Of a stretch of 64,000 nt of DNA, positions 1 through 46,689 are shown one piece after another. The stretch lies in the IMG/VR virus record IMGVR_UViG_3300042691_042003, positions 1 to 64,000 of that record, one strand, 5' to 3'. The notes beneath the pieces are model-generated. The model did no database searches and was not told where the DNA came from. It saw only the letters and a program-made list of their open reading frames with translations. Each line of letters begins with the position of its first letter. The first letter of the stretch is position 1. The position numbers and the translations under genes were made by a program.

Positions 1-184
1 TGACTGGACCTACAGGTGCAGGAGAACAAGGACCTACTGGATCTACAGGTGTTACCGGTGTTACAGGTATAACAGGAGTAACAGGTATGACTGGACCTAC
101 AGGTGCAGGAGAACAAGGACCTACTGGATCTACAGGAGTAACAGGTGTGACTGGACCTACAGGTGCAGGAGAACAAGGACCTAC
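1..184 (+). repeat. Recent direct duplications encoding [13 protein letters not shown]
   Basis: TGACTGGACCTACAGGTGCAGGAGAACAAGGACCTAC occurs at 1, 88 and 148; the first two copies match over 49 bp. Confidence 0.9.
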
Positions 185-3100
185 AGGTTCCACAGGTTCT
201 ACTGGTGTTACAGGTTCTACAGGACAAACCGGTCCTACAGGTGCAGGAGTATCAGGACCTACAGGTAATGTAGGAGGTATTCAATATATTTATGGATCTG
301 AATTAGTAGATTCAACTACTAGTCTTACTAGTGGATACTTTAATTTTAACGTTTCTTGGAGTAATTTAACCGTTGGTACCGATCGTAGATTATTTTTATC
401 GAGTAATAATTCTACAGGAGGCTCTATGCTTTCTATTATACAAGAATTAGGAAAAGGAATTAGAGGAGCTTCTTACTCTGCATATTTAATATTTAATGAT
501 AATTCTAATAATTCTATCATATTAGGAGTTTCGGCCGGATCTTCCTTTCTGAATAATGCTGGAAATGGATATAGATTTGATGTAAATGTTGTTTCTAGAT
601 CTTCTAATTCTTTTTCGAATAATGGTCCTGTAGGTTTAAATATAAATTGGGCAGGATATGGTCCTACTGGGGTTCAAGGTCCTACTGGTATGACTGGTAT
701 GACTGGAATGACTGGTATGACTGGTATGACAGGACCTACTGGTATGACAGGGTTAACTGGTCCTACTGGCCCTACTGGAACTATTGGTATGACTGGTGCT
801 ACTGGTGCTACTGGTGATATAGGTATAACTGGTCCTACTGGAGATTTCGTAACCGGTGCTTCTATAGATTTAAATCAAAATCTACTTTTTACAACATTAT
901 ATAATCAAACTTTATCAGCAGGAAAAGTTCCTTTAGGTCCTACAGGAGCTACAGGAGATCTAGGTCCTACTGGAATAACTGGTCCTACTGAATATGGTCC
1001 TACAGGACCTACCGGAGATCCAGGACCTACTGGAACTACAGGAGAAACTGGACCTACCGGTCCCACAGCCGTAGGACCTACCGGTCCTACAGGAGAAACC
1101 GGGCCGCAAGGTACTACAGGAACAAAAGGAGATGATGGAGTTTCTGGAGGTAGATTTTATTATTACAATCTTTCTGAAGGATCTTCTGCTAATTTTAATA
1201 GCTACAGAAAATTAGCTGATAATCCTACATCTTCGGGATCGACTTCTATTACTGTGTTTTTAGGAGCTTCTGGATCTCCAGGATCTACTGCTTTAATAGG
1301 TTCTTTCATAACTGATACCGGAGATCCTGGATCTTCTTTTATTCCTGGAGGAGTTTGGACTTATTATCTTCATTTAGACTCTACTTATACCGGATCGGTC
1401 CCTTATTTTAGAGTAAATGTTGATCTTTATAAAGGTACTACTACAGGTAACGAATTTCTCTTACAAGAAATGACTCCTATAGATGTTCTTTTAAACACGA
1501 CTAAAAGAACAATACCTTTTACTACGGTATTTGGAGGAACTACAATAGATCCATCGGATAGAATAATTTCTAAAATTATCTTATCAAATACTAGAACTAC
1601 TGCTGGATATACAGCTACATTTTATACTGAGGGTAATTCTACGTATTCTTATGCAACTACTACAATAGAGAGAATAGGATTTACTGGTCCTCAAGGGCCT
1701 TCAGGGGATATTGGTCCTACTGGTCATACTGGATCTACAGGAGAAACAGGTATGACTGGTCCTACAGGTGTTACAGGAGGAATTGGACCAACTGGTGTTA
1801 CTGGTATGACCGGACCTACCGGTGAAAAAGGAGCTACTGGATATGCTTCAGGACTTTTGTATTTCCTAAATAATACTCAAACAGTCACTGGCTCATTTAA
1901 AGAAATGAGTGGATTAATTAATACTAACGATCCTGGAGGAGCACTATCACAAATAAGTTTATTAGGAGAGGGTGCAACAGGGGTTGTAGCTGAATTTCAA
2001 ACTAGATCAGGAGATCCTGGAATTCCTTTATGGCCTCAAGGTTTATGGAATATAAATCCTTATATAGGTTCAGATGGAGGTGATTGGTTAATTTACGCTA
2101 ACATATATAAATACGATCCAAACACTGATACCGAAACTCTTTTAAAGACTACAAATTCTAATTCTTGGAGTATAACCGTTGGAGTTGATTCAAGATTTCC
2201 ATACCAAAGACCTTTATCGGTTTATTTTGATGAAGTTAATTTACAAACTACCGATCTTTTAAGAGTAAAAATAATAGCACAAAATAATACTCCATCTCCG
2301 AACAATGGACTGAAAGTAATAGAACTTAATTCTAGTCAAACACAAAATCCAGGATATTATTCTACAATAATTACTTCTCTACCAAATAGAGCTTTCATGG
2401 GAGTAAGTGGTCCTACTGGTATGACTGGTGCTACAGGTTCAGGAGTTACAGGACCCACAGGTGTTACAGGTATGACAGGTGCTACTGGGACAGGAGAACC
2501 AGGACCTACTGGCGTTACAGGTATGACTGGTATGACAGGTGCTACTGGGACAGGAGAACCAGGACCTACAGGTTCTACAGGAGTTACAGGTATGACCGGA
2601 CCTACAGGAGCTACAACTCCAGGACCTACAGGAGTTACAGGTATGACTGGTATGACTGGACCTACTGGTTCTCAAGGAAACGATGGAGTTGATGGTGTAT
2701 CTGGAGGTAAATTTTATTATTTTAATCTTTCTCAAGGGTCATCATCGTCAGTAGGATCTCCAACTTATAGAAGATTATCAGATGAACCTTCTGGAGCAGG
2801 AACTACTTCAATAGGATTTAGTATTGGAGCTGGAGCTACAGCTTTAATTGGTACTTATATAACCGACACTGGAGATCCCGAAACTCTTCTAGTTCCAGGA
2901 GGTGTTTGGACTTATTATTTAAATTTCGTTACCGATTATATAGATAATTTGATAGATAATTTAGGAATAAGTGTTGAACTTTATAAAAGATCTTCAGGAG
3001 GGACTGAAACTCTCCTTCAAGCATCTTCTCAAGTAGATTATGTGGTACTTACATCTCCAAAAACTTTACAATACAGTACAGTATTTGGAGGAACCACTCT

Positions 3101-44500: not shown

Positions 44501-46689
44501 TGGCTACTACTTCTAAATTTGTACAACTTAGTTCTTCAGTTTTATTAGAATATATTTATGCAGATCAAAATGCAATAAATACTGCAGGAAATCCTTATAG
44601 ATTAAATACTGATGATAATCCTATTTGGAGAACAAAAAACGATCATAATAAAGAAGATATTATTTTTAATGGAGATTCTGCAAAAAGAATAGAATTAGGT
44701 TTACCTATAGGAACTGGTAATGTTAGAGATAGATCTTATGCGTATATAGATCCTTATCGATTAGCACTTCTTGATATCGATAAAGTTACATTTTACAACG
44801 ATTTCGATTCTTCTCTTGATAATACTTCTTCTCTTCCTATTACATTTAACAATATTCAGGCTCCTGTTTATGATACAATTAAGCTTCATTTAGTTCAAGG
44901 TTTTAATTTTGAACAATATACAGGATTAGTTTTTAATATTAAAGTTAAAGATAAAAAAGGAAAAAATATTAATCTCCTTAATTTAGCTTATAATAAATCG
45001 GATTCTTTTGAGGTAAATAATCCTGCATCTTTCTTTTTTGCCGGAAAAGTTTATGATACGTATCTTGAAGTAAGAGTTCTTTCTCTCTATAATTTAATTT
45101 ATGATTATTGGGTTGGAGGGATTGATCCGGATTCTGTAGTTTATAAAATAACTAGAGGAGAAGGAATACAAAAAGAACAATTAATACAAATTAATTTTTC
45201 TTGGATTAGAGATAGAAAGGTAGTAGACGATCAGGAATATGTTTATCCTTATGATATCGTATCAGTAGATATTCCTCCTCAAGATCAATTTGAATCTATA
45301 GCTGCTAAAATTCAAGAATCTGAAGAATTTGATTATATTGAATTTTATGCAACTTACAAAGGAAATATTATAGATAATTTTATTACAGGATTAAATCAAA
45401 ATGGATATGATTATATTATTCTTCATGATTTAATTCTTTCCGAATATATTTACGATCCTACGGGAGCAACTTATTATTGGCAAAAAACCGACGAATTACA
45501 GCTATCTCAAACTTCAGAATATGATTTACCTAATAGATTTAGACCTGTAATAAAAAATGGATCCGCTATAGCTTTTAAAATAGATTATACGGTTAGGCTT
45601 TATAATAGGGAAGATAATTCTCAAATTTGGAAAACATCTTCTATGATTTCTTATTCTGCTGCTAAGTACGGTAAGAAACTTTTACAGATAAATTTAGGAG
45701 ATAATCCTGTACAATCTATAATTTATAATAAAAGTTTTATAAAAGAAGTTAAAATTAATAGAATAACCGAACCGGTTTTAGATAATTTCAGATATATCAC
45801 TTCTTTTATTAATAATACTCAAGTTTCTGTTTCGGTAGATAATACTACTGATAGCGAAAATTTTGTAACTTCTAATAATCCTAATATCTATCCGAATGGT
45901 CTTGCTAGAGTTTTAATTTCCGATTCGATAACTTATCTTAAGTTCTCTATATACACTAAGGATAAATCAGAGACTAATGTCCCTCTTAATCTTTCAGGAT
46001 TAGGAAAACTTCTTATTTCTTTCACTTCGGATACAGGAGAAAGTTTAGATATATATGAAACTCCTAGTCAAACTACATCTAAAACTTCAGGAGAGGTAGT
46101 TTTCAGATTAACTAAATCCGAATCTACTACTGTAAGTAATTATAAAGAAAAACAATTTAAGATTTATCTTATAAACGATAAAAATGAAAAAACATTTTTA
46201 TACGGTGGAAGATTTTATAATCAAAAGGAATGGGTAAAATTAGCAGAATCGGATAGAATTACACTTTTAGAAAAAAATGTTACCGATTTAACAACAGACA
46301 ATTCTAATTTAAATAGTACGATAGTTACTCAATCAGAAAGGATTAATAGTCTTACTCAACAGATGAATCAGCTTCTCACGGAAGATGCAAAAGAGACAGT
46401 AGTTCTCAATATACAAAAAGATACAATTAATGATTTAACTAAACAAGTTAATGAATTAACTGCTAAACTTGATGTTGCTAATTCTAGATTAAATTCTTCT
46501 CAGGGATTAGTTAATAATTTAAGAATAAAGCTAAACAATCAACAAACTTTAAATGCCTCTTTATCTCAACAGTTAAATACATTTAAAACAACTTCTGAAA
46601 CTTTACAAGATCTATTAGAAGCTAATATGGGTAGTGTAAATAATACTAATGCTTCAACCTATAGTACAGGAAGTACTTCTTCTAATTAA
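44500..46689 (+). CDS. Virion structural protein with long C-terminal coiled coil
   Basis: 729 aa; heptad-rich Asn/Gln/Leu tail from about aa 590. Confidence 0.5.
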   Translation: MATTSKFVQLSSSVLLEYIYADQNAINTAGNPYRLNTDDNPIWRTKNDHNKEDIIFNGDSAKRIELGLPIGTGNVRDRSYAYIDPYRLALLDIDKVTFYNDFDSSLDNTSSLPITFNNIQAPVYDTIKLHLVQGFNFEQYTGLVFNIKVKDKKGKNINLLNLAYNKSDSFEVNNPASFFFAGKVYDTYLEVRVLSLYNLIYDYWVGGIDPDSVVYKITRGEGIQKEQLIQINFSWIRDRKVVDDQEYVYPYDIVSVDIPPQDQFESIAAKIQESEEFDYIEFYATYKGNIIDNFITGLNQNGYDYIILHDLILSEYIYDPTGATYYWQKTDELQLSQTSEYDLPNRFRPVIKNGSAIAFKIDYTVRLYNREDNSQIWKTSSMISYSAAKYGKKLLQINLGDNPVQSIIYNKSFIKEVKINRITEPVLDNFRYITSFINNTQVSVSVDNTTDSENFVTSNNPNIYPNGLARVLISDSITYLKFSIYTKDKSETNVPLNLSGLGKLLISFTSDTGESLDIYETPSQTTSKTSGEVVFRLTKSESTTVSNYKEKQFKIYLINDKNEKTFLYGGRFYNQKEWVKLAESDRITLLEKNVTDLTTDNSNLNSTIVTQSERINSLTQQMNQLLTEDAKETVVLNIQKDTINDLTKQVNELTAKLDVANSRLNSSQGLVNNLRIKLNNQQTLNASLSQQLNTFKTTSETLQDLLEANMGSVNNTNASTYSTGSTSSN

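Follow-up and report, generated by a model that had tools for sequence, protein, structure and literature searches.

In BclA, a spore protein of Bacillus anthracis with a C1q-like C-terminal domain, the threonine (Thr)-rich collagen-like region carries O-linked oligosaccharides. In Listeria monocytogenes the flagellin O-linked N-acetylglucosamine (O-GlcNAc) transferase GmaR works in the cytoplasm, where it O-glycosylates Ser/Thr of a filament protein prior to assembly; it is also an anti-repressor. Known short linear glycosylation sequons include N-x-S/T and the D-S/T-hydrophobic motif of Bacteroidota. To our knowledge, glycosylated phage virions are rarely documented, and we know of no short acceptor motif defined for them. 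Mycobacteriophage glycosyltransferases are said (Freeman et al. 2023, Cell Host Microbe) to modify virion proteins – capsid and tail-tube subunits – in the cytoplasm; reportedly no G-x-T sequon is described there, and hosts and phage lineages are unrelated to those of the phage considered below. SgtA of Clostridioides difficile, which combines a GT-A domain with tetratricopeptide repeats (TPR), adds O-GlcNAc to Thr in the GPT repeats of BclA3, and short linear peptides suffice as substrates, even when they contain one Thr only (PMC7157674). Here we analyze the tripeptide glycine-x-threonine (G-x-T) in proteins of an uncultured jumbo phage, represented by IMG/VR record IMGVR_UViG_3300042691_042003. 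The stretch under study (hereafter the window) is the first 64 kb, positions 1 to 64,000, of this 246,081-bp record. The triplet makes up the collagen-like blocks of a giant fibre and occurs in excess, outside such blocks, in three proteins; a 409-amino-acid (aa) glycosyltransferase encoded elsewhere in the genome is a candidate for the enzyme that reads it.

The genome has 31% G+C, carries almost every gene on one strand, and has a CheckV completeness given as 80; it encodes a tail sheath of 1111 aa, and the tail is thus contractile. Its giant fibre is a single open reading frame (ORF) of 3681 aa, running from genome position 244581 to window position 9614 once a 69-bp terminal repeat (window 1-69 and genome 246013-246081) is collapsed. 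Since this repeat lies inside collagen-coding repeats, it may reflect closure of the assembly within a repeat, and not true virion ends. Collagen is the only Pfam family matched by the fibre (4e-55, 9 stretches). Within the window there are 19 collagen blocks, composed mostly of G-x-T triplets, and the globular domains between blocks hold about 53-60 isolated G-x-T. Thr occupies the Y position in 162 of the 208 block triplets of the window (295 of 435 genome-wide), which bears out the earlier proposal that the same triplet builds the collagen; at X the residues are P, M, V, A and S. A PF13640 / 2OG-Fe(II) (prolyl or lysyl) hydroxylase was looked for in the genome and none was found. By its sequence, the phage builds BclA-type collagen-like fibres out of G-x-T triplets. 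As in BclA, these would be Thr-rich filaments on the surface of a particle; in BclA, however, glycosylation is reported inside its collagen-like part rather than at scattered isolated triplets. The likeness to SgtA/BclA3 lies both in a G-x-T (GPT) collagen-like surface protein and, by described architecture, in a GT-A (GT2-like) enzyme with C-terminal helical repeats. The differences are that the present system belongs to a jumbo phage, that the enzyme gene stands apart from the collagen genes, and that the putative acceptors include isolated triplets in globular proteins.

It is these isolated triplets that the preliminary description of the DNA singled out, claiming that G-x-T is scattered through globular parts of virion proteins but not enzymes. 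ORFs were called genome-wide, and G-x-T was counted outside G-X-Y runs and compared to a composition-matched expectation and to shuffled sequences. The 1295-aa protein of the tail module contains 25 G-x-T where 6.7 are expected (z 7.1, composition shuffle), in line with the number first counted; the giant fibre outside its collagen blocks contains 60 where 30 are expected (z 6.0, composition shuffle), or, under a stricter mask, 53 where 27 are expected (Poisson P 8e-6); and a 594-aa protein encoded outside the window (genome 171766-173550) contains 15 where 3.5 are expected (z 6.8). With the stricter mask, these three are the only proteins among 171 ORFs that are significant after Bonferroni correction. 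The features of the window that enter these comparisons are as follows.

3..9614, + strand: giant collagen-like fibre, C-terminal 3204 codons (ORF starts at genome 244581; Pfam Collagen)
24639..28526, + strand: 1295-aa baseplate/tail-module protein, with the strongest G-x-T excess
26529..26750, + strand: variable low-confidence loop region, residues 631-704 of the 1295-aa protein
27354..27638, + strand: residues 906-1000 of the 1295-aa protein, the densest G-x-T segment
29092..34789, + strand: 694-aa and 1203-aa virion-module proteins, internal controls
34810..39651, + strand: 1613-aa virion-module protein, internal control
39664..43713, + strand: 1349-aa fibre-like protein with one short collagen run
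44500..46689, + strand: 729-aa protein
52561..54078, + strand: UvsW-type helicase, 505 aa, enzyme control
61567..63351, + strand: ribonucleotide reductase large subunit (NrdA), 594 aa, enzyme control

The 1349-aa fibre, one of the examples first given, is weakly enriched (18 against 10 expected, z 2.9, P 0.014) and fails multiple-testing correction; the 1613-aa protein, another, is at expectation (10 against 5.9). No enrichment is evident in the 1203-aa (3 against 5.2), 694-aa (5 against 3.1), 729-aa (2 against 2.5) or 1706-aa (8 against 8.2) proteins, nor in the tail sheath (12 against 7.4). UvsW (2 against 1.5) and NrdA (2 against 2.9) carry what their composition predicts, and so are not depleted in the triplet. 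In the remaining proteome the ratio of observed to expected G-x-T is ~1.1-1.2, as it is in unrelated phage genomes. Thus the counts of the preliminary description are right and the strings quoted in it are present (SGPTSGSTAGATY, YGATG and AGWTGPT in the 1295-aa protein; KGSTSYGPTAT in the 1613-aa protein), and in the enriched proteins the excess survives control for Gly/Thr content, but the contrast between virion proteins and enzymes comes mostly from Gly/Thr content together with the three enriched proteins: because the excess is limited to these three, the signal is not general to virion proteins. The enrichment is real, lineage-specific and maintained; it is narrower than first claimed.

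The excess is also specific to the motif. In the same enriched proteins T.G, GT, TG, G..T and G.S are all at expectation. Codons at isolated G-x-T match genome-wide usage, which places the constraint on the protein; a DNA-level motif is rejected on the same ground. In the enriched proteins the X position is P, A or S at 45% of sites, compared to 23% of G-x-T elsewhere in the proteome (P 3.5e-5), a preference that resembles the X position of the collagen blocks. Positions -1, X and +1 are poor in charged residues, and a Gly next is commoner than elsewhere. Sites in the enriched proteins form a motif class of their own – G-[P/A/S]-T, flanked by uncharged residues and frequently followed by Gly.

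The 1295-aa protein consists of a conserved N-terminal core followed by a string of Ig/FN3-like beta-sandwiches, with a PKD-like domain at the end. The "wedge" label first attached to it is unestablished: PHROGs gives an unnamed family only, and a profile search of PDB returned just a marginal PKD match. Distant relatives are found in Tenacibaculum phages pT24 and PTm1, Sphingomonas phage PAU, Lak phages and several huge uncultured phages. An alignment of 55 full-length homologues from metagenomes shows the G-x-T excess in 54 of them, with 1384 sites in the family against 449 expected, while the control motifs T.G and G..T have ratios of 1.05 and 0.81. About ten alignment columns hold G-x-T in more than 60% of the homologues; the bulk of the excess is in columns common to 4-27 of the 55 sequences, which indicates that sites persist inside subclades and turn over from one subclade to another. 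The sites avoid the conserved cores: G-x-T density is 0.2-0.4 per 100 aa in residues 161-430 and 701-905, and 2.9-6.1 in variable segments. The family maximum, 6.1 per 100 aa, falls in residues 906-1000, where a conserved mini-run GPTGxTGAT......GxTG is found. Similarly, 92% of G-x-T sites, compared to 54% of all residues, lie within 6 columns of a column prone to insertion or deletion (indel). An AlphaFold model of residues 430-1295, with a mean predicted local distance difference test (pLDDT) score of 76, is a string of beta-sandwiches for which Foldseek finds just generic Ig/FN3 arrays; five sites fall in a low-confidence loop of the model at residues ~630-704 (pLDDT <50 for model residues 201-275), and by sequence residues 631-704 hold eight G-x-T (sites 638-686 among them). 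Mapping on the predicted structure thus places the sites in loops or at loop-to-strand junctions, within indel-prone segments that we infer to be surface-exposed. G-x-T is kept by selection, singly or in runs of two or three, in the variable segments of a few tail proteins.

If the excess were a property of the fold, then homologues with the same fold should share it. They do not. In the T4 proteins gp5, 6, 7, 10, 12, wac, 18, 34 and 37, G-x-T ratios are 0-1.9. The homologue of the 1295-aa protein in LR756500.1 (a 462-kb phage), 33% identical, has 3 G-x-T against 3.2 expected. Ratios across 80 IMG/VR homologues are bimodal: 2-4 for the nearer clade, 0.3-1.9 for all others. The enriched 594-aa protein has two neighbouring paralogues and elsewhere weak homologues only (neither of the two large protein searches returned an orthologue); the weak homologues pool at a ratio of 1.15, in a set that probably includes the neighbouring paralogue P0250 (634 aa). 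A fold feature, or a general feature of phage fibres, is therefore rejected.

A search for glycosyltransferases elsewhere in the genome, as had been proposed, was productive: the genome encodes three Pfam GT2 proteins, a GT32-like DXD protein, a nucleotidyltransferase, two SDR epimerase/dehydratases, oxidoreductases and methyltransferases. Notable among these is the 409-aa GT2 (genome 145902-147131; PF00535, E 3.9e-14). Its best sequence matches in PDB are GmaR (3.9e-9), SunS (1.4e-8) and a ThuS-type enzyme (2.6e-7), aligned over residues 36-127 for GmaR, that is, the catalytic core only, and over residues 29-261 for SunS. The AlphaFold model (pLDDT 90) predicts a GT-A domain with alternating strands and helices at residues 36-198, and a ten-helix solenoid at residues 210-408 (pLDDT >90). 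With this model Foldseek returns SunS (8.7e-18) and ThuS (2e-16) over 393-401 columns; the next fold is TarS (4e-8), where ordinary GT2 enzymes begin, ten orders behind. No Pfam TPR family matches the enzyme, so the assignment of a TPR-like helical repeat rests on the predicted fold. Residues D121 and D123, the acidic metal/sugar-nucleotide motif, are invariant across 39 homologues, and neighbours in the ESM Atlas are GT2 or GT2-plus-TPR clusters, mostly viral. Among relatives the enzyme (60-84% identity) is more conserved than the 1295-aa protein.

The nearest solved relatives of the 409-aa enzyme all glycosylate proteins or peptides, and on the strength of the predicted fold it is a candidate protein/peptide glycosyltransferase of the SunS/ThuS/GmaR type. 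SunS and ThuS (PDB 7msn, 7msp, 7msk) give the best, nearly full-length fold matches, together with sequence matches of 1e-8 to 3e-7, but are 16-19% identical to the phage enzyme and S-glycosylate Cys of small secreted bacteriocins encoded adjacent to them; GmaR gives the best sequence match to the GT2 core, but the alignment does not extend beyond it, and GmaR doubles as an anti-repressor. Beside the gene of the phage enzyme we recognised neither a Cys-rich precursor of the glycocin type nor a dedicated exporter, and more than 45 kb separate this gene from those for collagen and fibres. At 0.74 kb upstream there is a 121-aa Gly-rich ORF (genome 144799-145164) that contains GLT, GPT, GST and three GGT in a short stretch and has no PHROG match.

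Two clusters hold further sugar genes. One, a sugar-metabolism cluster at genome ~126-138 kb, contains the GT32-like DXD protein, a GT2, an MBL-fold protein, FAD and GFO/IDH/MocA oxidoreductases, two methyltransferases, a DUF6492 protein and the nucleotidyltransferase, and within it lies a 410-aa RuBisCO large-chain-like protein (genome 137499-138731; PF00016, 1.2e-32). The other, at genome 232054-238813, comprises a short thymidylate-synthase homologue of 230 aa, a 432-aa protein matched weakly to GT-B, a 300-aa GT2, the two SDR epimerase/dehydratases and a P-loop kinase-like protein. Clusters for DNA hypermodification are known, for example to arabinosylated (glycosylated) 5-hydroxycytosine (PMC13326640). 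The 232-239 kb cluster resembles these, and by analogy the phage DNA may be glycosylated.

If the 409-aa enzyme acts on G-x-T, then enzyme and enrichment should occur together across genomes. A ratio of at least 2.5 in the homologue of the 1295-aa protein is found in four of four genomes with an enzyme copy of at least 47% identity – those designated G013 (76%), G008 (70%) and G012 (47%), plus the window's own genome – and in none of the five other informative genomes (Fisher 0.008, taken at face value on related genomes). The genomes of G023, G029 and LR756500.1, which are complete or near-complete, have neither enzyme nor enrichment. Several of the genomes that encode the enzyme contain at least five G-x-T triplets in a row, among them a 735-kb phage with GPT repeats; many other enzyme-bearing genomes have no such runs. 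Collagen of another kind is seen in G023 (IMG/VR, 373,759 bp), in which Ser is at Y in 321 of 369 G-X-Y triplets.

Together these data lead us to propose, tentatively and somewhat short of regarding it as probable, that units of G-[P/A/S/aromatic]-T serve as acceptors in a system for protein O-glycosylation that the phage itself encodes: this is the best explanation that we have. In the infected cell the initial sugar would be attached to the G-x-T Thr by the 409-aa enzyme, in the way that SgtA modifies GPT peptides, and the remaining transferases may extend it. The outcome would be a glycan layer over the collagen fibres and over distal proteins of the baseplate or fibres, which could stabilise Thr-type triple helices and shield or tune exposed loops. 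A fuller version is possible but doubtful, namely that in this jumbo-phage lineage the collagen unit G-[P/A/S]-T has become a portable sequon, read by a SunS/SgtA-like cytoplasmic glycosyltransferase and scattered by selection through hypervariable distal-tail loops, so that fibres and baseplate acquire a phage-made glycan coat; in that case it would be the first O-glycosylation sequon to be defined for a bacterial virus. Either way, the system would join Thr-collagen glycosylation of the BclA/BclA3 type and phage virion glycosylation, both of which are known. The earlier reading of the triplet as a glycosylation sequon thus gains from the composition control, the location in variable segments and the GT2 candidate, and loses the coat over the whole virion, for which, with a signal in three proteins only, there is no evidence.

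Several observations weigh against O-glycosylation. The tail sheath and several large virion proteins are at expectation, and cytoplasmic proteins show no avoidance of G-x-T, as is evident from the ratio in the rest of the proteome. SgtA accepts Ser, yet G-x-S shows no enrichment. The enzyme gene, unlike sgtA/bclA3, adjoins none of the collagen and fibre genes, which lie tens of kb away, and the genes of the 232-239 kb cluster, given its resemblance to DNA-modification clusters, may not serve proteins. In two genomes, G009 and G011, the enzyme homologue is intact (46% and 39% identity), yet the ratios for the homologue of the 1295-aa protein are 1.6 and 1.4; and since the genomes are related by ancestry, the co-occurrence of enzyme and enrichment is not independent evidence. 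Genomes with enzyme homologues of 35% identity show no G-x-T-enriched ORFs, but at this distance specificity may differ, and the null result neither supports nor refutes the link. Finally, modification of the G-x-T Thr is itself deduced and not directly observed.

A real possibility, if on the unlikely side, is that G-x-T is an unmodified structural motif and a habit of the lineage, in which Gly closes a turn and Thr opens an Ig/FN3-like strand, or in which polyproline-II-like G-P/A/S-T stiffens loops. The protein is a beta-sandwich string, some ten columns retain the triplet in most homologues, and in 9 of 22 modelled sites the Thr is within one residue of a strand start, compared to 15.6% of all residues (P 0.004), as at other Gly+2 positions: this fits a purely structural role and counts, to that extent, against glycosylation. 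However, other Gly residues also stand two positions before a strand start in 34% of cases, so that the junction does not explain why Thr follows. Nor would a structural role be expected to leave same-fold homologues, T4 fibre proteins and the weak homologues and paralogues of the 594-aa protein without excess. Where Gly is kept and Thr lost in the 55-sequence family, the replacement is often Ser (198 of ~513) and rarely Val or Ile (51), and the strong exclusion of charge at X (Asp or Glu at 5 of 892 sites) is unexpected for a generic turn. It is unlikely, and more so than the structural motif, that G-x-T is a recognition element for some non-glycosyl role – docking of collagen to the baseplate, binding of a host polymer, or another modification – and that the SunS-like enzyme has another substrate, for instance a small peptide or a host protein. 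Such a role would accord with the distribution of the enzyme, which is far wider than that of the enrichment (over 6000 homologues, many of them from genomes that lack G-x-T collagen), with the small secreted peptides that SunS and ThuS use as substrates, and with the Gly-rich G-x-T ORF upstream of the enzyme; the lack of a recognisable glycocin-like precursor or exporter beside the enzyme speaks against it, and a docking interaction is without evidence.

The remaining explanations require no function. Isolated triplets might be debris or seeds of collagen repeats that enter loops by slippage or recombination and then decay, a view to which runs of two or three triplets (GYTGPLGWT, for example, and the conserved GPTGxTGAT), a 1.9-fold enrichment of TG in the family and the placement of sites in indel-prone segments all lend some weight. 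We consider it improbable. Gly codons are GGA-rich at isolated sites, as in the genome, and GGT-rich in collagen blocks (P 2e-5), which means that the sites are not recent copies of collagen DNA; indel lengths lack a three-residue periodicity (22% of 556 indels are multiples of three), and an origin by triplet slippage is rejected on these two grounds. Moreover, most of the excess lies in columns maintained within subclades, and in G008 (254,393 bp) Gln is at Y in 132 of 237 collagen triplets – that is, the collagen is G-x-Q – yet its homologue of the 1295-aa protein is 3.1-3.3-fold enriched in G-x-T: isolated sites are thus not a mere by-product of G-x-T collagen. Least probable by far is that a composition rich in Gly and Thr, or local compositional patches, give rise to the excess as a statistical artefact. 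The enriched proteins are indeed rich in Gly and Thr, and sites cluster in G/S/P/T-rich variable segments; but the excess persists when residues are shuffled inside 30-aa windows as well as over whole proteins, mirror and shifted motifs remain at expectation, and the excess recurs throughout the family alignment, on which basis a compositional artefact is rejected.

If G-x-T is indeed such an acceptor motif, virion glycosylation would become predictable for many uncultured phages from their sequences alone. It would also account for the broad distribution of GT2-plus-helical-repeat enzymes among phages and giant viruses, and offer a way into the shielding or stabilisation of tail proteins. The hypothesis now has a concrete candidate enzyme and, despite the phage being uncultured, is directly testable with one enzyme and short peptides. 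If it is wrong, a lineage-specific, maintained tripeptide bias in variable loops is still documented and needs another explanation.

Three further genes merit mention. A second, full thymidylate synthase of 394 aa is encoded at genome 141510-142694; its Pfam match is broken into three stretches, which suggests an insertion. Between the fibre gene and the baseplate module lies a gene (window 18874-20037) for a 387-aa protein with a C-terminal S1 RNA-binding domain (PF00575, 6.4e-29). At window 59024-60409 there is a family-B DNA polymerase ORF of just 461 aa, which comprises the exonuclease domain plus the initial part of the polymerase domain: the DNA polymerase may be split over two genes.

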